Origin: Pseudomonas aeruginosa PAO1
Lineage (GTDB): Bacteria; Pseudomonadota; Gammaproteobacteria; Pseudomonadales; Pseudomonadaceae
Strand: one strand, 5' to 3'
Assembly: GCF_000006765.1 (NCBI RefSeq)
Contig: NC_002516.2
DNA length: 64,000 nucleotides
The translations under genes and the position numbers were made by a program. The notes under the pieces were generated by a model. It had not been told where the DNA came from, did no database searches, and worked only from the letters and a program-made list of their open reading frames with translations. Shown here one piece after another: positions 28,322-37,853 of the stretch. Position 1 is the stretch's first letter. Every line of letters starts with the position of its first letter.

Positions 28322-28436
28322 GTCCCTGAGCGGACTTTTGCCAGACTGCGCCAGTGCGTTGGCCAGGCTCACCGGGTGGTGACGCGATCGGTTGCGCCAC
28401 CGCCCGGATACTTCAACAAAAATGGAGCTACCCCGC

Positions 28437-29540
28437 ATGATGAAACGTTTCGGTAAGACCCTGCTCGCCCTGACCTTGGCGGGCTCTGTGGCCGGTATGG
28501 CGCAGGCTGCGGACAACAAGGTGCTGCACGTGTACAACTGGTCCGACTACATCGCGCCGGACACCCTGGAGAAGTTCACCAAGGAAACCGGGATCAAGGT
28601 CGTCTACGACGTCTACGACAGCAACGAAGTGCTGGAAGCCAAGTTGCTGGCGGGCAAGTCCGGGTACGACGTGGTGGTGCCGTCCAACTCCTTCCTCGCC
28701 AAGCAGATCAAGGCCGGGGTCTACCAGAAGCTCGACAAGTCCAAGCTGCCGAACTGGAAGAACCTGAACAAGGACCTGATGCACACCCTGGAAGTCAGCG
28801 ACCCGGGCAACGAGCATGCGATTCCCTACATGTGGGGCACCATCGGCATCGGCTACAACCCGGACAAGGTCAAGGCGGCCTTCGGCGACAACGCGCCGGT
28901 GGATTCCTGGGACCTGGTATTCAAGCCGGAGAACATCCAGAAGCTGAAGCAGTGCGGCGTCAGCTTCCTCGACTCGCCGACCGAGATCCTCCCGGCGGCC
29001 CTGCATTATCTCGGCTACAAGCCGGACACCGACAATCCCAAGGAACTCAAGGCGGCCGAAGAGCTGTTCCTGAAGATCCGTCCCTACGTCACCTACTTCC
29101 ACTCGTCGAAGTACATTTCCGACCTGGCCAACGGCAACATCTGCGTCGCCATCGGCTACTCCGGCGACATCTACCAGGCCAAGTCCCGCGCCGAAGAGGC
29201 GAAGAACAAGGTCACCGTCAAGTACAACATTCCCAAGGAAGGCGCCGGCAGCTTCTTCGACATGGTCGCCATTCCGAAGGACGCCGAGAACACCGAGGGC
29301 GCCCTGGCCTTCGTCAACTTCCTGATGAAGCCGGAAATCATGGCCGAGATCACCGACGTGGTTCAGTTCCCCAACGGCAACGCGGCGGCCACCCCGCTGG
29401 TGTCCGAGGCGATCCGCAACGACCCGGGCATCTACCCGAGCGAAGAGGTCATGAAGAAGCTGTATACCTTCCCCGACCTGCCGGCCAAGACCCAGCGGGC
29501 GATGACCCGCAGCTGGACCAAGATCAAGTCCGGCAAGTGA
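28437..29540 (+). CDS. spuD: putrescine-binding periplasmic protein
   Basis: 367 aa from MMKRF; YNWSDYI, YDSNE, GYSGD, F273. Confidence 0.95.
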
Positions 29541-29934
29541 TCCGCGAGGAGCCCGGCGGCGCCTGAAGCCGCCGGCGCTCCGGCACGAGAGAACCGGAAC
29601 GCGGCCGGGTTTCCTCCGGCCGCGCTCCCCTGCGAAGAGGTTCGACTCTTTTGCCCGTTCGTCCAGACGCTTCCTCCTGGGGGCCCGACGACCGGACGCA
29701 GTATCGACGACGAAGACGCTGCCATGGGCGCTGCGCCAATCTGCCGCGCCGGGGCCGGTCGTGTCGCTCGCACCGGGGCCGAGGGCCCGGAAAACCTGAA
29801 ACCAACACGCCGGTAGGGAACCCAGCTCACTCATGTTTCCCGGCGGAATCGTCGGGTTGTCATGAAACCCGAGTGATCTGGGCTTACATCGGCACTTGAA
29901 GAACACGGGTCGAACAGGCAGGGTGCTGCCGTGA

Positions 29935-31056
<1,122 letters not shown>

Positions 31057-31110
31057 GTTCAAATTCCGCCCGGTAGCGTGACCGGGCTCAACGACTTGGG
31101 AGTTGTGGTA

Positions 31111-32265
31111 ATGGCGATAGCCTCCGGTGCCTACAAGAAAGCCCTAGAGGGCAACCAGCAGCCGAAAGAGGTGCTGGTAAAGATCGACCGGGTAACCAAG
31201 CAGTTCGACGAGACGCTGGCGGTGGACACCGTGTCCCTGACCATCAACAAGGGCGAGATCTTCGCCCTGCTCGGCGGCTCCGGCTCGGGTAAATCCACCC
31301 TGTTACGCATGCTCGCCGGTTTCGAGCGGCCCACCGAGGGGCGGATCTTCCTCGATGGCCAGGACATCACCGACCTGCCGCCCTACGAGCGGCCGATCAA
31401 CATGATGTTCCAGTCCTATGCGCTGTTCCCGCACATGAGCGTGGCGCAGAACATCGCCTTCGGCCTCAAGCAGGACGGCCTGCCCAAGGCCGAGATCGAC
31501 GAGCGCGTGGCCGAGATGCTCAAGCTGGTGCACATGACCCAGTACGCCAAGCGCAAGCCGCACCAGCTCTCCGGCGGCCAGCGCCAGCGGGTGGCCCTGG
31601 CTCGTTCGCTGGCCAAGCGGCCGAAGCTGCTGCTGCTCGACGAGCCGATGGGCGCGCTGGACAAGAAGCTGCGCTCGCAGATGCAACTGGAACTGGTGGA
31701 GATCATCGAGCGCGTCGGCGTGACCTGCGTGATGGTGACCCACGACCAGGAAGAGGCCATGACCATGGCCCAGCGCATCGCCATCATGCACCTGGGCTGC
31801 ATCGAGCAGATCGGCAGCCCGATGGACATCTACGAGACCCCGGCGAGCCGCCTGGTCTGCGAGTTCATCGGCAACGTCAACCTGTTCGACGGCGTGCTGG
31901 TGGAGGACGTGCAGGACCATGCGGTGATCGCCTGCCCGCAGCTGGAGAACCCGATCTACATCGGCCACGGCATCAGCACCCGCGCCGAGGACAAGCGCAT
32001 CACCTACGCGCTGCGGCCGGAGAAAGTGATGATCAGCGCGCAGAAGCCGGACAACCTGGAACACGCCGGGCACAACTGGGCCCAGGGCACCGTCTACGAC
32101 ATCGCCTACCTTGGCGGCCACTCGGTGTACTACATCAAGCTGGCGTCCGGGATGATCGTCCAGGCCTTCATGGCCAACGCCGAGCGCCACGTCGCCCGGC
32201 CGACCTGGGACCAGTCGGTGTACATCAGCTGGTACGACGACAGCGGCGTGGTACTGCAGTCATGA
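31111..32265 (+). CDS. spuF: polyamine ABC transporter ATP-binding protein
   Basis: [24 protein letters not shown]; start MAIASG at 31111. Confidence 0.95.
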   Translation: MAIASGAYKKALEGNQQPKEVLVKIDRVTKQFDETLAVDTVSLTINKGEIFALLGGSGSGKSTLLRMLAGFERPTEGRIFLDGQDITDLPPYERPINMMFQSYALFPHMSVAQNIAFGLKQDGLPKAEIDERVAEMLKLVHMTQYAKRKPHQLSGGQRQRVALARSLAKRPKLLLLDEPMGALDKKLRSQMQLELVEIIERVGVTCVMVTHDQEEAMTMAQRIAIMHLGCIEQIGSPMDIYETPASRLVCEFIGNVNLFDGVLVEDVQDHAVIACPQLENPIYIGHGISTRAEDKRITYALRPEKVMISAQKPDNLEHAGHNWAQGTVYDIAYLGGHSVYYIKLASGMIVQAFMANAERHVARPTWDQSVYISWYDDSGVVLQS

Positions 32266-33173
32266 AATTCGCCAACAGCCTGAAAAAGCGCATGCCCACC
32301 GGGCGGCATGCGGTCATCGGGGTGCCGTTCCTGTGGCTCTTCCTGTTCTTCCTGCTGCCCTTCGCCATCGTGCTGAAGATCAGCCTGGCGGAAGCGGACG
32401 TGGCCATCCCGCCCTATACCGAGATCTTCGCCTACGCGGACCAGCAGTTGCAGGTGCTCCTCAACCTCGGCAACTACCTGATGCTGACCGATGACCCGCT
32501 CTACATCGATGCCTACCTCGGCTCGCTGAAGATGGCCTTCATCAGTACCCTGATCTGCCTGCTGGTGGGCTACCCGATGGCCTACGCCATCGCCCGCTCC
32601 AGCCAGTCCTCGCAGACCGTCCTGCTGCTGCTGATCATGATGCCGACCTGGACGGCGATCCTGATCCGGGTCTATGCCTGGATGGGCATCCTTTCCAACA
32701 ACGGCCTGCTAAACAGCGTACTGATGGGGCTGGGGCTCATCAGCGAGCCGCTGACCATCCTCAATACCAACATCGCGGTGTACATCGGCATCGTCTATTC
32801 CTACCTGCCGTTCATGATCCTGCCGCTCTACGCCAACCTGGTGAAGCACGACCCGAGCCTGCTGGAGGCCGCTTCCGACCTGGGCGCGCGTAACTTCACC
32901 AGCTTCTGGAAGATCACCGTGCCGCTGTCGAAGAACGGCATCATCGCCGGCTGCATGCTGGTGTTCATCCCGGCGGTGGGCGAGTTCGTCATCCCGGAAC
33001 TGCTCGGCGGCCCCGAGACCCTGATGATCGGCAAGGTGCTCTGGCAGGAGTTCTTCAACAACCGCGACTGGCCGGTGGCGTCCGCCCTGGCGGTGGTGAT
33101 GCTGGCGATCCTGATCATCCCGATCATCCTGTTCAACAAGAACCAGGCCAAAGAACTGGAGGGCAAGGTATGA
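32262..33173 (+). CDS. spuG: polyamine ABC transporter permease
   Basis: ATGA overlap with spuF; EAASDLGA, FIPAVGEF, RDWPVASA. Confidence 0.94.
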   Translation: MKFANSLKKRMPTGRHAVIGVPFLWLFLFFLLPFAIVLKISLAEADVAIPPYTEIFAYADQQLQVLLNLGNYLMLTDDPLYIDAYLGSLKMAFISTLICLLVGYPMAYAIARSSQSSQTVLLLLIMMPTWTAILIRVYAWMGILSNNGLLNSVLMGLGLISEPLTILNTNIAVYIGIVYSYLPFMILPLYANLVKHDPSLLEAASDLGARNFTSFWKITVPLSKNGIIAGCMLVFIPAVGEFVIPELLGGPETLMIGKVLWQEFFNNRDWPVASALAVVMLAILIIPIILFNKNQAKELEGKV

Positions 33174-33259
33174 GCCAGCACAGCGTATCCCGCTCCGTAT
33201 CCCGTTCAACAGGCTCTCCATCCAGAAGCGTGGCCAAAGAACTGGAGGGCAAGGTATGA
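33146..33259 (+). repeat. perfect 28-bp direct repeat GGCCAAAGAACTGGAGGGCAAGGTATGA (33146-33173 and 33232-33259)
   Basis: read directly; period 86 bp; each copy contains a GGAGG SD and ATGA. Confidence 0.97.
33170..33259 (+). CDS. putative 29-aa relay mini-ORF (MSQHSVSRSVSRSTGSPSRSVAKELEGKV)
   Basis: open frame from the ATG overlapping the spuG stop to the TGA overlapping the spuH start; SD present. Confidence 0.55.
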   Translation: MSQHSVSRSVSRSTGSPSRSVAKELEGKV

Positions 33260-34125
33260 AGCGCTGGAATTTCTCCAACGTCATGCTGATCGTCGGCCTG
33301 CTCTTCATCTACCTGCCGATGCTGATCCTGGTGATCTATTCGTTCAACGCCTCCAAGCTGGTGACGGTGTGGGGCGGCTGGTCGGTGAAGTGGTACGTCG
33401 GCCTGCTGGACAACACCCAACTGGTCAGTTCGGTCGGACGCTCCCTGGAGATCGCCTTCTATACGGCGTTCTCCTCGGTGTTCCTCGGCACCCTGGCGGC
33501 CTTCGTCCTCACCCGTATCCCGCGCTTCCGCGGTCGTACGCTGTTCGGCGGCATGGTCACCGCGCCGCTGGTGATGCCGGAAGTGATCACCGGCCTGTCG
33601 CTGCTGCTGTTGTTCGTGGCCATGGCGCAACTGATCGGCTGGCCGCAGGAACGGGGTATCGTGACCATCTGGATCGCCCACACCAGCTTCTGCTCGTCCT
33701 ACGTGGCGGTGGTGGTGTCGGCGCGCCTGCGTGAACTCGACCTGTCGATCGAGGAAGCGGCGATGGACCTGGGCGCCAAGCCCTGGAAGGTGTTCCTGCT
33801 GATCACCATCCCGATGATCGCGCCCTCGCTGGCGGCGGGCGGCATGATGTCCTTCGCCCTGTCGCTGGACGACCTGGTACTGGCCAGCTTCGTCTCCGGA
33901 CCCGGCTCGACCACCTTGCCGATGGAAGTGTTCTCGGCGGTACGCCTGGGCGTGAAGCCGGAGATCAACGCGGTGGCCAGCCTGATCCTGCTGAGCGTTT
34001 CGCTGTTCACCTTCTTCGCCTGGTACTTCACCCGCCAGGCCGAGGAGCGGCGTCGCCGGGCGATCCAGCAGGCGATGGAAGAGACCGCGACCGACTGGCA
34101 GAAAGGCTCGCCGACCCCGGCCTGA
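33256..34125 (+). CDS. spuH: polyamine ABC transporter permease
   Basis: IYSFNAS, PLVMPEVITG, EEAAMDLGA, LSLDD, PEINA. Confidence 0.95.
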   Translation: MKRWNFSNVMLIVGLLFIYLPMLILVIYSFNASKLVTVWGGWSVKWYVGLLDNTQLVSSVGRSLEIAFYTAFSSVFLGTLAAFVLTRIPRFRGRTLFGGMVTAPLVMPEVITGLSLLLLFVAMAQLIGWPQERGIVTIWIAHTSFCSSYVAVVVSARLRELDLSIEEAAMDLGAKPWKVFLLITIPMIAPSLAAGGMMSFALSLDDLVLASFVSGPGSTTLPMEVFSAVRLGVKPEINAVASLILLSVSLFTFFAWYFTRQAEERRRRAIQQAMEETATDWQKGSPTPA

Positions 34126-34302: not shown

Positions 34303-36690
34303 TCAGCGCTTCGGCTCCAGCACCAGCACGCCCTTGCTGTTCGCCTTCACCTCGTTTTCCTCATAGTGCTGCGGCAGGTAGTGGCCCTCGATGTAGGCCT
34401 CGGCCTGGTCGTCGTAGTGGCCGTCGAAGGGCACGCCGCTCTGCCCGACCGGGTTGATGCCGAGGCTGTGGGTCGGGTCGGCGAAGTCCACCAGGCGCCG
34501 GGTCGATGGGCCGTAGGTGACCGCCCAGGGGGCCGGGCCGATCTTCGCCGACAGATTGTTCGGTACCTCGTGGGTGCCGGGGGCGGCGAACGGACCGACG
34601 TTGAGAAGGCGCCTGAGCAGCGCTTGCTGGCCCAGGGCGTGCTCGTGGGTCAGGGTATGCGCCTTGCCCCACAGCCAGCCGGACGGGTCGTTGCCGAGGG
34701 TGCCGCGCAGATGCGCGAGGGAGGCGTTCCAGGCGGTCCTGACGATATCCGCGCGGGTTTCCCGGCGTTCTGTGCGGCGGTCGTCCCACCAGGGCGAGTC
34801 GGCGTCGCCAGCCAGCCGAGGCAGCGCGCTGTCGATGGCGCGGGTGGCGATCAGGCTGTCGAAGAAGGCATCGCCCAGTTCGTCGTGCAAGGCGCCCTCG
34901 GCAATCTGGAACAGCAACTGGTTGAACAGCGTGGCGGCGGTCGAGTCGACCGGGTAGTCGCCGTTCCAGGCCGCCAGTTGCTCGACCAGGCGCTTGCCTT
35001 CGGCGTCGTCGACCACCTCGCGCAGGACCGGCAGCAAGGGTGCGAGCAGGCGTGGCGCGTAGCCGGTGCGATTGCCGAGTTGCAGCGCGCGGCTGTTGTC
35101 CAGGTTCCATTTGGTGCCGCGGTCGGCCAGTTGGGTATCCAGCCACTGGCCGCGGTCCGCCAGGTTGTAGTAGCCGGGAATCGGCCGGCCATTGGCCGGG
35201 ACCGGCTGGAAGTTGGCGGAGACGATGTAGCCGCGCGCCGGGTTTTCCTCCTGTGGGTTGTCGGCGAACGGATAGAAGCCGGACTTGTCCGCCTCGCCCT
35301 TGCTGCCGTCGAGGATGAAGCTCGGGTTCACCCCCTCCGGCCGCTTCGGCAGGGCCGCCGAGGCCCACCAGCCGATATCGCCGGCGGCGTTGGCCCAGAC
35401 CAGGTTGAGTCCCGGCGAATGGATCTTCGAGGCCGCCGCGCGGGCCTTGGCCAGGGTATCGGCGCGATTCAGCTGGTAGAAGGCGTCGAGCACCGGGTTC
35501 TCGGTCTCGAGGAAAGCCCACCACATGGCGATCGGGGTCTTGCCGGAGCTGGCGCCGAGCGCGTCGTTGACGATCGGACCGTGGGGCGAGCGGCGCAGGG
35601 TGAGCTTCACCGGCGCAGCGCCCTTGACCGCGATTTCCTGCTCCTCGCTCTGCAGGTCGACCCATTCGCCCTGGTACCAGACCTGGTTGGGGTTGTCCGG
35701 GTTGACCTTCTCGGCGACCAGGTCGAGGTCGTCGTTCTGGAACATCGTCAGGCTCCAGCCGAACGCACGGTTGTGGCCCAGCGAGGCGAAGGGGTTGAGA
35801 GCCTGGTGGTGGCCATAGAGTTCGAAGCCGGGCGCGCTCAGCTGGGCCTCGTACCATACCGCCGGCGCGGCGAAGCGGATATGCGGGTCGCCGGCCAGCA
35901 GGGGCTTGCCGCTGGCGGTGCGGCTGCCGGCGACGACCCAGGCGTTGCTGCCCTCGAACTGCGGCAGGCCGGCGTCCTCCAGGGCCTGCTGGCTGAGACG
36001 GGCGAGGGCGCCGAGGTCCTTCCAGTCGCCGGCGCCCAGTGCGCCGGAGGGCGTCAGCACGCCCTGCGGATGCCAGTCGAGATCGAAGATGCGCAGGTAG
36101 TCGCTGCCCAGTTCGTCGCGGATGTAGGTCAGCACCGGCTCGGTGCGGAAGGCGGCAGCGAAGCTGTAGGCCATGTAGCCGGCGATGCTCAGGGTATCTT
36201 CGGGGGTGAAGGGACGCCTGGGTATGCCCAGCAGATCGAATTCGAGCGGCGCCGGGTTGTTCTCCTGGAACTGGTTGACCCCGTCCAGGTAGGCCTCCAG
36301 CACTTTCCAGGGCTGCGACTGCTTGTCCTGGCGGGCGCTGTATTCGGCGGCGTGGTCGCGGATGCGCAGGGTGCGGAACAGACGGTCGGTATCCACCAGC
36401 TTGGGTCCGAGCACTTCGGCCAGCTCGCCGCGCGCCAGGCGCCGCAGCATTTCCATCTGGAACAGGCGGTCCTGGGCGTGCACGTAGCCGAGGGCGCGGT
36501 AGAGGTCGGTCTGGTTCTGCGCATACAGGTGCGGAACCCCGCGCTCGTCGTAGCGCACGTCGACCGGCGCCTGCAGGTGGGCCAGGGCGAGCGAGCCGTT
36601 GCGGAGCGGCTGCTTGGCATGGAGGTACCAGGCGCCGCCGGCAGCCGCGGCGGCGACCGCCACGGCGATCACGGTCAGGGTGCGTTTCAT
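34303..36690 (-). CDS. hacB: Ntn-hydrolase (penicillin acylase family) acyl-homoserine lactone acylase
   Basis: 795 aa; N-terminal hydrophobic anchor, YDERGVPH, HAQDRLFQME, beta-subunit start GSNAWVV, LAGDPH; name from recall of PA0305. Confidence 0.9.
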   Translation of the reverse strand: MKRTLTVIAVAVAAAAAGGAWYLHAKQPLRNGSLALAHLQAPVDVRYDERGVPHLYAQNQTDLYRALGYVHAQDRLFQMEMLRRLARGELAEVLGPKLVDTDRLFRTLRIRDHAAEYSARQDKQSQPWKVLEAYLDGVNQFQENNPAPLEFDLLGIPRRPFTPEDTLSIAGYMAYSFAAAFRTEPVLTYIRDELGSDYLRIFDLDWHPQGVLTPSGALGAGDWKDLGALARLSQQALEDAGLPQFEGSNAWVVAGSRTASGKPLLAGDPHIRFAAPAVWYEAQLSAPGFELYGHHQALNPFASLGHNRAFGWSLTMFQNDDLDLVAEKVNPDNPNQVWYQGEWVDLQSEEQEIAVKGAAPVKLTLRRSPHGPIVNDALGASSGKTPIAMWWAFLETENPVLDAFYQLNRADTLAKARAAASKIHSPGLNLVWANAAGDIGWWASAALPKRPEGVNPSFILDGSKGEADKSGFYPFADNPQEENPARGYIVSANFQPVPANGRPIPGYYNLADRGQWLDTQLADRGTKWNLDNSRALQLGNRTGYAPRLLAPLLPVLREVVDDAEGKRLVEQLAAWNGDYPVDSTAATLFNQLLFQIAEGALHDELGDAFFDSLIATRAIDSALPRLAGDADSPWWDDRRTERRETRADIVRTAWNASLAHLRGTLGNDPSGWLWGKAHTLTHEHALGQQALLRRLLNVGPFAAPGTHEVPNNLSAKIGPAPWAVTYGPSTRRLVDFADPTHSLGINPVGQSGVPFDGHYDDQAEAYIEGHYLPQHYEENEVKANSKGVLVLEPKR

Positions 36691-36800
36691 CGATCCTTTC
36701 TCCTTGTTGTAGTGCCGAGCATTCTGCGGATGCCGCCGGCCCGCGGCATTGACCGAATGCTCGGACCCTGGAAGTCTTTGGTCAATCGCGAGGAGCCGCC

Positions 36801-37853
36801 ATGCAGGACGACCCGTCTACCAGCCCCCTGACCCATTCCGCCACGTTGCGGCGTCTGTTGTATGAAGCCCTGGACGCCCTCGGGCTCGACCCCACCCGCG
36901 TCTACCGCAGCGTCTACCGGCGTATCCCGCTGCCGCCGCCGACCCTGGGCGGCCGCCTGGTGCATGACAACGCCCCGTTGTTCTGGACCGAGCTGGCGGC
37001 GGTGACCGGCGATGCCGACATCGGCCTGCACCTGGGCGAGGCAATGAAGCCGCGCCTGCTCGATGTGGTCGGCTACCTGCTGCTGTCCGCGCGCGACCTG
37101 GAGGAGGCGCTGCGCAGCTTCGTGCGTTTCCAGCACATTCTCTCCGGCGGTTTCGCCGCGCGCCTCGAGGTCGAAGGGGAAACGGCAAGGCTGATCCTCG
37201 ACATCAACTACCTGGGCTATGCCTCGCTGCGCCAGCAGATCGAATGCCTGATGCTGCTGTTCCTCAAGCTGCTGGCGCTGATCAGCGACGACGAGTTCGT
37301 CGCCGAGCGCATCGAGTTCCGCCACCGAGCCCCGCCGCGGCTGGGCGAACACCGCCGGTTGTTCGGCAGGCTGCCGCTGTTCTCGCGGCCGCACGATGCC
37401 CTGGTGTTTTCCGCCGCCTTGCTGCGGCGTCCTTCGCGCAACGCCAATCCGGACATGCATGACGTGCTGACCCGCCACGCGGAAGAACAGTCCCGCGAAC
37501 TCAGCGAGAACCGCTTGCTCAATCGCGTGCGCTACCTGATCGAGCTGCGCCTCGGGGAGGGCTATGGCTTGCGCCAGTGCGCGGCGGAGCTGGGCCTTGG
37601 CAGCGGTGCCTTGCAGCGTGCGCTGGCCGCTGGGGGAGCGAGTTTCCGGCAGGTTCGCGATGAGGTTCGCCGGCAGCGGGCGAGCGAGATGCTGTTGGCC
37701 GGTCGCGCCATCCGCGAGGTGGCCAAGGCTTGCGGGTTCGCCGAGCTGTCGCCGTTCTACCGGGCCTTTCGCCGCTGGCACGCCGCGCCCCCGGAGCAAT
37801 ACAGGGCGCGGCTGGCGAAGCGGGAAGAGGGTTACTCGACCAGCGGTACCTGA
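36801..37853 (+). CDS. AraC-family regulator with a long N-terminal ligand domain
   Basis: GDADIGLHLG; C-terminal double HTH (FRQVRDEVR...IREVAKACGFAELSPFYRAFRRW). Confidence 0.92.
   Translation: MQDDPSTSPLTHSATLRRLLYEALDALGLDPTRVYRSVYRRIPLPPPTLGGRLVHDNAPLFWTELAAVTGDADIGLHLGEAMKPRLLDVVGYLLLSARDLEEALRSFVRFQHILSGGFAARLEVEGETARLILDINYLGYASLRQQIECLMLLFLKLLALISDDEFVAERIEFRHRAPPRLGEHRRLFGRLPLFSRPHDALVFSAALLRRPSRNANPDMHDVLTRHAEEQSRELSENRLLNRVRYLIELRLGEGYGLRQCAAELGLGSGALQRALAAGGASFRQVRDEVRRQRASEMLLAGRAIREVAKACGFAELSPFYRAFRRWHAAPPEQYRARLAKREEGYSTSGT

Follow-up and report, generated by a model that had tools for sequence, protein, structure and literature searches.

How does an operon that couples two permease genes through a four-base stop/start overlap cope with an insertion at exactly that overlap? 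In the 64,000-nt stretch of the Pseudomonas aeruginosa PAO1 chromosome analysed here (the window), the polyamine-permease genes spuG and spuH are separated by a second copy of their own ATGA junction, and a short open reading frame (ORF), here called the mini-ORF, runs from the first ATGA to the second. The inserted unit, which we refer to as the cassette, raises the question of whether its peptide, its translation or neither is what matters. We consider it likely, with a probability of roughly 0.7, that the cassette is a tolerated duplication of the junction that must stay translated for SpuG-SpuH termination-reinitiation coupling.

The spuG-spuH junction is duplicated

The 28-mer GGCCAAAGAACTGGAGGGCAAGGTATGA was found exactly twice, at an offset of 86 nt, and no further copy at three or fewer mismatches was detected in the window, with zero expected from shuffled sequences. 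The features of the region, all on the plus strand, are as follows.

32262..33173, +, spuG, PotH-like permease of 303 amino acids (aa), also annotated as 293 aa from 32292 (ORF list; PF00528)
33117..33140, +, spuG-tail source segment ATCATCCCG ATCATCCTG TTCAACAAG, a diverged copy of which lies inside the spacer (repeat search)
33146..33173, +, junction copy 1: the last eight sense codons of spuG (AKELEGKV), the first Shine-Dalgarno sequence (SD1) GGAGGG at 33158-33163, and ATGA (spuG stop and mini-ORF start)
33170..33259, +, relay mini-ORF of 29 codons, ATGA to ATGA (ORF list; closure conserved across loci)
33174..33231, +, 58-nt spacer: diverged, frame-shifted copy of the spuG tail followed by a cassette-specific motif (alignment A1)
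33184..33207, +, 12-nt tandem CGTATCCCGCTC / CGTATCCCGTTC (copies 33184-33195 and 33196-33207), polymorphic, single-copy in a 74-nt P. aeruginosa allele
33212..33231, +, cassette-specific motif GGCTCTCCATCCAGAAGCGT, in place of the AACCAG of the spuG tail, with GCTCTCCA at 33213-33220 (alignment A1)
33232..33259, +, junction copy 2: the identical 28-mer, with the second Shine-Dalgarno sequence (SD2) GGAGGG at 33244-33249 and ATGA (mini-ORF stop and spuH start)
33256..34125, +, spuH, PotI-like permease of 289 aa (ORF list; PF00528)

An original prediction, made from the letters of the window, had described a perfect 28-nt repeat at the end of spuG and the start of spuH, and a Ser-rich frame of 29 codons that is opened by the first ATGA and stops in the second. 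Both descriptions were borne out. The predicted product is MSQHSVSRSVSRSTGSPSRSVAKELEGKV, with nine Ser among its first 20 residues, and SD2 lies 6 nt before the spuH ATG. The arrangement is that of the leader cistron in bicistronic expression designs: SD1 precedes a short ORF that contains SD2 and stops at the start of spuH.

The spacer is C-rich and G-poor and occurs once in the window. It does contain the diverged spuG copy that had been noticed before (33199-33213 and 33126-33140 are identical at 13 of 15 positions). Written out, the spuG tail ATCATCCCG-ATCATCCTG-TTCAACAAG corresponds to CGTATCCCGCTC-CGTATCCCG-TTCAACAGG in the spacer, and the spacer tandem mirrors the ATCATCCCG/ATCATCCTG repeat of spuG itself. 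A tandem of CGTATCCCG had been reported; the tandem is real, but its true unit is the 12-nt CGTATCCCGCTC / CGTATCCCGTTC. The peptide is Ser-rich because the copied Ile, Pro and Phe codons are read one base out of frame, ATC-CCG-TTC-AAC becoming A-TCC-CGT-TCA-AC. The proposal of an old duplication also held; the 3' end of spuG was copied together with the junction.

The frame between the junctions is conserved and the peptide is not

Searching one genome per species with a protein-guided scan yielded 80 spuH loci, 79 of them with a readable junction. Direct spuG/spuH ATGA overlap was found in 66 of these 79 species loci (a few differ by one extra start codon) and the cassette in 13. In parallel, a frame-blind DNA pattern, TGGAGGG-N6-DTGA-N{51,81}-TGGAGGG-N6-ATGA, was run on metagenome contigs; it matched 118 loci, 39 of which lie in a spuG/spuH context by tblastn. 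The genome loci, the metagenome loci and the window together comprise 52 cassette loci with 49 distinct units. Most units are 86 nt long (33), and the others measure 80 (8), 77 (4), 83 (2), 78 (1) and 89 nt (1). Units of 86 nt occur in the nitroreducens, resinovorans-like, oryzihabitans-like and anguilliseptica-like groups; those of 83 nt were found at L053 and L064, and the 77-nt unit of the genome survey at L016.

In all 52 loci, in every length class and in tandem pairs too, the ORF that begins at the spuG stop closes exactly in the spuH ATGA. The -4 nt (ATGA-type) overlap is conserved at both ends of the cassette throughout, with GTGA opening the ORF in the L037 group. All unit lengths are 2 mod 3 except for a 78-nt unit at L117, which reads in frame into the next unit of 77 nt, and the pair of 78+77 nt still closes. 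The start codon at the first junction was kept in 13/13 loci of the genome survey, which set no condition on that codon. Matches of the metagenome pattern outside spu loci had offsets distributed modulo 3 as 33, 13 and 33 loci, and thus the search pattern did not impose the frame on the spu loci. Furthermore, none of the 49 units contains an in-frame stop, whereas 19 have a stop in the +2 frame and, leaving aside the TGA that belongs to the ATGA, about 23 have one in the +1 frame. It had been predicted that the frame linking the two junctions would be preserved, with frequent out-of-frame spacers named as the observation that would count against this; no such spacer was seen among the 52 spu-context loci, and the frame is kept in the 74-nt allele as well. 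The accompanying estimate, that a correct frame is a one-in-three chance event, holds for a single genome; across loci the agreement is far beyond chance.

Conservation of the frame does not extend to the encoded residues. In alignment A1, eight of the 86-nt units carry an additional base at column 44 and lack one at column 88, so that the total stays at 86. These eight (class I) read the copy in the SpuG frame (..IILFNRLSTQNRAKEMEGRP), whereas the remaining 86-nt units, including that of the window (class II), read the middle shifted by one base (..CSTGSPSRS.AKELEGKV). N-terminal halves of the peptide are unalignable between lineages, and the ratio of nonsynonymous to synonymous change (pN/pS) of the spacer-encoded peptide was 0.98, compared with 0.79 in each of the other frames (13 roughly independent pairs pooled). 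No match of the 29-aa peptide to Pfam was found. Universal closure, a stop-free frame, frame switching and a pN/pS of 0.98 together show that translation from junction to junction is constrained and the product is not. On this comparison of loci, selection removes variants that break ORF closure, and the cassette would be a clear example of an ORF translated for its position rather than its product.

Gain, loss and homogenization of the cassette

Alleles within P. aeruginosa were found by exact-protein look-ups, and 73 contigs, a non-random sample, were read. Three alleles were seen: the 86-nt unit of the window, a 74-nt unit and a scarless deletion. In the 74-nt allele (L203-L212, SpuH variant P0033) the 12-nt tandem is single-copy and the mini-ORF has 25 codons, four residues fewer, while ATGA-to-ATGA closure is kept; its junction copies differ by GGA in copy 1 versus GGC in copy 2 and have GGCT in common. 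A scarless loss of the 86 bp, which brings back the direct ATGA overlap, was found at L202 (1100-1260), L216 and L221, with two more places listed as similar, giving about 5 of the 73 contigs; the three named loci come from assemblies GCA_053347835.1 and GCA_051350955.1 and from run SRR31658528. The deletions stand on two different SpuH protein backgrounds, suggesting recurrent loss. That recombination between the repeats could cleanly delete the cassette had been foreseen, and these natural alleles show such loss directly.

Across lineages, a locus holds 0, 1 or 2 copies of the cassette. P. paraeruginosa carries two tandem 86-nt units (L001:2329-2504, ATCC 9027; also L170). The spuH-proximal unit has one spacer difference from the window cassette (counted from aligned sequences) and the spuG-proximal unit differs at 9 of 59 positions; the 5' part of the latter seems to have undergone renewed conversion towards the spuG tail. 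The site is polymorphic in length (0/74/86/172 nt) in P. aeruginosa and P. paraeruginosa. On a tree of the flanking spuGH coding sequence, at least 7-9 changes are needed to explain presence and absence, with differences even between very close relatives. This pattern, as read from the tree, fits repeated loss through recombination between junction copies together with occasional gain of units.

All 49 spacers are C-rich and G-poor (35% versus 18%). Independent recent duplication in each lineage was rejected for the 86-, 83-, 80- and 89-nt types by their common cassette motif and indel pattern. The motif-less 77-nt units of L016 and L091, which resemble their own spuG tails along the entire length, may be independent and younger duplications. 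If they are, more than one duplication of the junction took place, and every surviving unit is 2 mod 3. A mobile or dispersed element was rejected too, as the spacer with its motif was found once in the 64-kb window and the unit copies the 3' end of spuG itself. The sole match of a plasmid search was a spuG-like coding sequence in one 4.9 Mb record labelled Aeromonas caviae.

The two junction copies differ on average at 2.4 of 28 positions within a genome and at 5.6 of 28 between genomes. Where positions are lineage-specific, as with CAAGGT or CCGGCC ahead of the ATGA, 44-48 of 49 genomes have matching bases in both copies, compared with about 25 expected, and every haplotype of P. aeruginosa or P. 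paraeruginosa has either GGCC or GGCT in all of its copies. These comparisons indicate concerted evolution, with gene conversion homogenizing both junction copies. The perfect 28-mer of the window had been taken as a sign of strong conservation; it instead reflects recent gene conversion and lies at the low end of a range of 0-9 mismatches across lineages.

Three records stood apart in the survey. The spuGH locus of L004 (JBKYMN010000008.1) falls inside the P. nitroreducens clade though the record is titled 'Enterobacterales bacterium'; probably the label is wrong or the bin is contaminated. P. kulmbachensis has two paralogous spuGH-like loci (L047 and L049) in one genome, both without the cassette. 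In P. aeruginosa PA6761, a 332-aa 'hypothetical protein' (P0011, MFI9655702.1) is a SpuG frameshifted near residue 255 that reads through in the mini-ORF frame and ends in ...MSQHSVSRSVSRSTGSPSRSVAKELEGKV, owing either to a real spuG frameshift or to a sequencing error.

A proposed translational relay between spuG and spuH

These findings can be joined in a simple scheme. In our reading the cassette duplicates the last ~75 nt of spuG, with the embedded Shine-Dalgarno sequence and ATGA. When the duplicated length is 2 mod 3 a relay arises automatically, since translation from the ATG within the ATGA then follows the SpuG frame through the copy as far as the copy's own TGA. Ribosomes that end spuG, or that load at SD1, would then translate an ORF of 25-30 codons, terminate on the UGA that overlaps the spuH AUG and reinitiate there with the help of SD2. 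Coupling of the permease subunits would thereby outlive an insertion of 74-172 nt, and the peptide would be a by-product. Recombination between junction copies, as the comparison of loci shows, adds or removes units to give 0, 1 or 2 copies.

Published work agrees with such a scheme. Overlaps of -4 nt are enriched among subunits of heteromeric complexes, and at native gene pairs almost no reinitiation is left once an untranslated gap reaches ~20-38 nt (PMC10666635). An untranslated gap of 70-82 nt would therefore be expected to uncouple SpuH from SpuG, and a translated spacer would not. In bicistronic designs, removal of the leader stop lets ribosomes overrun the start out of frame, and downstream expression is much lower (10.1101/2023.02.09.527918), so that a cassette variant of the wrong length could plausibly be costly. 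Dependence of spuH on mini-ORF translation is backed indirectly by the frame conservation described above. What the sequence comparison shows is a constraint on the frame of an existing cassette, as distinct from a benefit of carrying one, and the original inference that the cassette was retained because it tunes SpuG:SpuH coupling goes further than this. Most probably the cassette is a tolerated, near-neutral passenger and not an adaptation.

Several points weigh against the relay. The mini-ORF peptide is unnamed wherever it has been called, and the case for its translation is made here by comparing loci. Length changes in multiples of three could partly reflect slippage on the codon-phased 9- and 12-nt repeats and not selection. 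Class I units inherit the open spuG frame and are subject to repair by gene conversion, and thus part of the stop-free signal is not independent. A neutral cassette flanked by 28-nt repeats should vanish fast, and its persistence might mean that it confers some benefit. Finally, SD2 alone might suffice for initiation at spuH.

Alternative explanations

The benefit just raised could take the form of an adaptive tuner, in which the cassette sets the SpuH:SpuG ratio. Fewer ribosomes would pass each relay step, a copy number of 0, 1 or 2 would act as a rheostat, and GCTCTCCA would mask the Shine-Dalgarno sequence of spuH unless the mini-ORF is translated. Persistence of the cassette in distant lineages despite easy deletion speaks for this idea, as do the copy-number differences between close relatives and within P. 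aeruginosa. At the RNA level, the cassette motif contains GCTCTCCA, which is complementary to TGGAGGGC in the SD2 region. Pairing is possible in 92% of cells in register, compared with 33-61% when slid, and all variation in the pair is C<->U opposite G. In the local fold of the window, moreover, SD2 is sequestered, with an unpaired probability of 0.06 versus 0.36 for SD1.

The wider set of loci told otherwise. Across the 49 units SD2 was no less accessible than with shuffled spacers (0.213 versus 0.207) and did not differ from SD1 (p=0.51). RNAalifold gave no consensus structure (-1.64 kcal/mol, covariation 0), and no Rfam match was found at E<=1. The motif is absent from several lineages (L099, L157, L016 and L091), and the cassette itself is missing from 66/79 species and from some P. 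aeruginosa isolates. A conserved anti-Shine-Dalgarno hairpin of GCTCTCCA with TGGAGGGC was rejected on these grounds, and with no covariation, no Rfam family and Shine-Dalgarno accessibility equal to that of controls the region lacks the marks of a structured cis-regulatory RNA. Masking of SD2 in the lineage of the window is possible from the predicted fold, as a local rather than a general property. Taken together, we regard the tuner as unlikely.

Less probable still is that the cassette is an untranslated scar, an intergenic remnant downstream of which spuH starts independently at SD2, with mutational bias and gene conversion producing the frame pattern. The strong SD2, GGAGGG 6 nt before the ATG, would permit such a start, and codon-phased repeats such as the 12-nt tandem favour slippage in steps of three. 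Neither accounts for the compensating +1/-1 indels between the frame classes, for in-frame stops in none of 49 units where the other frames have them in 39-47%, for the 78-nt unit that is rescued solely by in-frame read-through, or for first-junction start codons retained in every locus of the genome survey. From its composition, the C-rich and G-poor spacer would be a potential Rho-loading segment if it were untranslated.

Highly improbable is a functional micropeptide, that is, a 29-aa product with an effect on the transporter, perhaps through the mimicry of the SpuG C-terminus that had been suggested: its last eight residues are those of the SpuG tail and class I peptides copy about 20 SpuG residues, yet the two reading frames give unrelated middles, the N-terminal halves cannot be aligned, pN/pS is close to 1 with no family match, and natural alleles drop four residues or the whole unit.

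The same two frame classes and the same pN/pS mean that the peptide lacks the conservation of a regulatory leader or arrest peptide, and annotation of the mini-ORF as a functional micropeptide is to be avoided. An N-terminally extended SpuH or a SpuG-SpuH fusion was also rejected, since in the window no start codon lies in the spuH frame upstream of 33256, and in P. paraeruginosa, the nitroreducens group and the 74-nt P. aeruginosa allele GGCTAAAG places a TAA in that frame.

Relation to known systems

Most Pseudomonas species have at spuG/spuH the single -4 nt overlap known from coupled genes for subunits of heteromeric complexes (PMC6728339; PMC10666635); the cassette differs in having two such overlaps bridged by a translated spacer. 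The closest functional analogue is the bicistronic design, in which SD1 drives a short leader ORF, SD2 lies inside it, the leader stop overlaps or abuts the gene start, and expression requires that ribosomes finish the leader at the point of restart (10.1101/2023.02.09.527918). That design is engineered, sits at the 5' end of the transcript and uses TAATG, whereas the cassette is natural, lies between cistrons, has ATGA at both ends and was born by duplication. Upstream ORFs proposed for 'ribosome delivery' (PMC12548453) are likewise short ORFs whose sole proposed role is to drive translation of the next gene; they precede the first gene and are often regulatory, in contrast to the cassette ORF, which is internal to the operon and duplicates a junction.

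Mycobacterial interspersed repetitive units (MIRUs) are the closest natural precedent. In the summary of Supply et al. 1997 given in PMC12548453, the internal ORF of the repeat unit is coupled at -4 nt to the adjacent gene, presumably minimizing the impact of insertion. MIRUs and the cassette are alike in being intra-operon units of tens of bp with an ORF coupled at -4 nt and a copy number that varies between strains, and the cassette indeed forms tandem units of 74-89 nt (0, 1 or 2 copies) with a unit ORF that overlaps the flanking stop and start. The MIRUs described there are dispersed, apparently mobile and present at many mycobacterial loci. Unlike them, the cassette, which occurs in Pseudomonas, was copied locally from the 3' end of spuG and is homogenized with this parent gene; the interspersion typical of MIRUs was not seen in the 64-kb window, where the spacer with its motif occurs once and the unit is related to flanking spuG.

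The locus thus provides a natural experiment in which translation is constrained and the encoded sequence is free, separating 'translation matters' from 'product matters' in the annotation of small ORFs. As a natural counterpart of the bicistronic design, it also illustrates how two subunits of a complex can stay coupled although extra sequence has entered the stop/start overlap between their genes in the operon. The spuDEFGH genes are important for spermidine uptake and spermidine-dependent signalling in P. aeruginosa (PMC2110884), and given that role alleles that change SpuH dosage could have phenotypes. In the literature mentioning both spuG and spuH, no title or abstract, the parts searched, concerned the junction.

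Whether the phenomenon is wider can be approached through the frame-blind scan. Look-alike duplicated junctions with a closing mini-ORF were found on metagenome contigs at gene pairs other than spu (L148, L114, L186 and L150/L184), among them a trpF-like/trpE-like pair (L148), aminomutase-subunit-like genes (L114) and a site upstream of a nuoK-like gene (L186), the identities being assigned by eye from translations. One could imagine that junction-duplication 'relay ORFs' form a general, unrecognized class of operon polymorphism in bacteria and archaea, arising at ATGA overlaps, filtered to 2 mod 3 and serving as a copy-number rheostat for stoichiometry, and that the spu cassette is under balancing selection that tunes spermidine uptake; we offer this as speculation and hold it to be rather doubtful.

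The spu operon and neighbouring sequence

The window contains a polyamine ATP-binding cassette (ABC) importer of the spuD/E-F-G-H type. Its gene order, including the downstream penicillin-amidase gene, matches that in P. aeruginosa genomes, where identical proteins are encoded, and the exact SpuG protein is present on more than 1000 P. aeruginosa contigs. Both spuG and spuH carry BPD_transp_1, and the adjacent ABC ATPase has a TOBE domain, as in the permease pair of an ABC importer. The ATPase gene is the remaining feature of the coupled series.

31111..32265, +, spuF-like ABC ATPase with ABC_tran and TOBE_2 domains; 384-aa gene calls in P. aeruginosa genomes

Three ATGA overlaps were found in the window, spuF/spuG at 32262-32265, spuG/mini-ORF at 33170-33173 and mini-ORF/spuH at 33256-33259. 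The first, where the spuF stop TGA overlaps the start of the long form of spuG, depends on which start is used, and annotation pipelines are split between 303 aa (start in the spuF ATGA) and 293 aa (start at 32292). Neither start (window 32262-32294) is preceded by an obvious Shine-Dalgarno sequence. In diverged loci, tblastn alignments begin at SpuG residue 1 and the first 10 residues align, which favours the 303-aa form on sequence grounds. The original prediction had all four ORFs, from spuF to spuH, coupled by ATGA. The overlaps are indeed present, but that between spuF and spuG, and with it their coupling, holds only if the 303-aa start is used.

Elsewhere in the window, long ORFs run antisense to or out of frame with real genes (28428-30050, 29884-31062, 34366-36831 and others); they are no evidence of genes and are typical of high-GC DNA.

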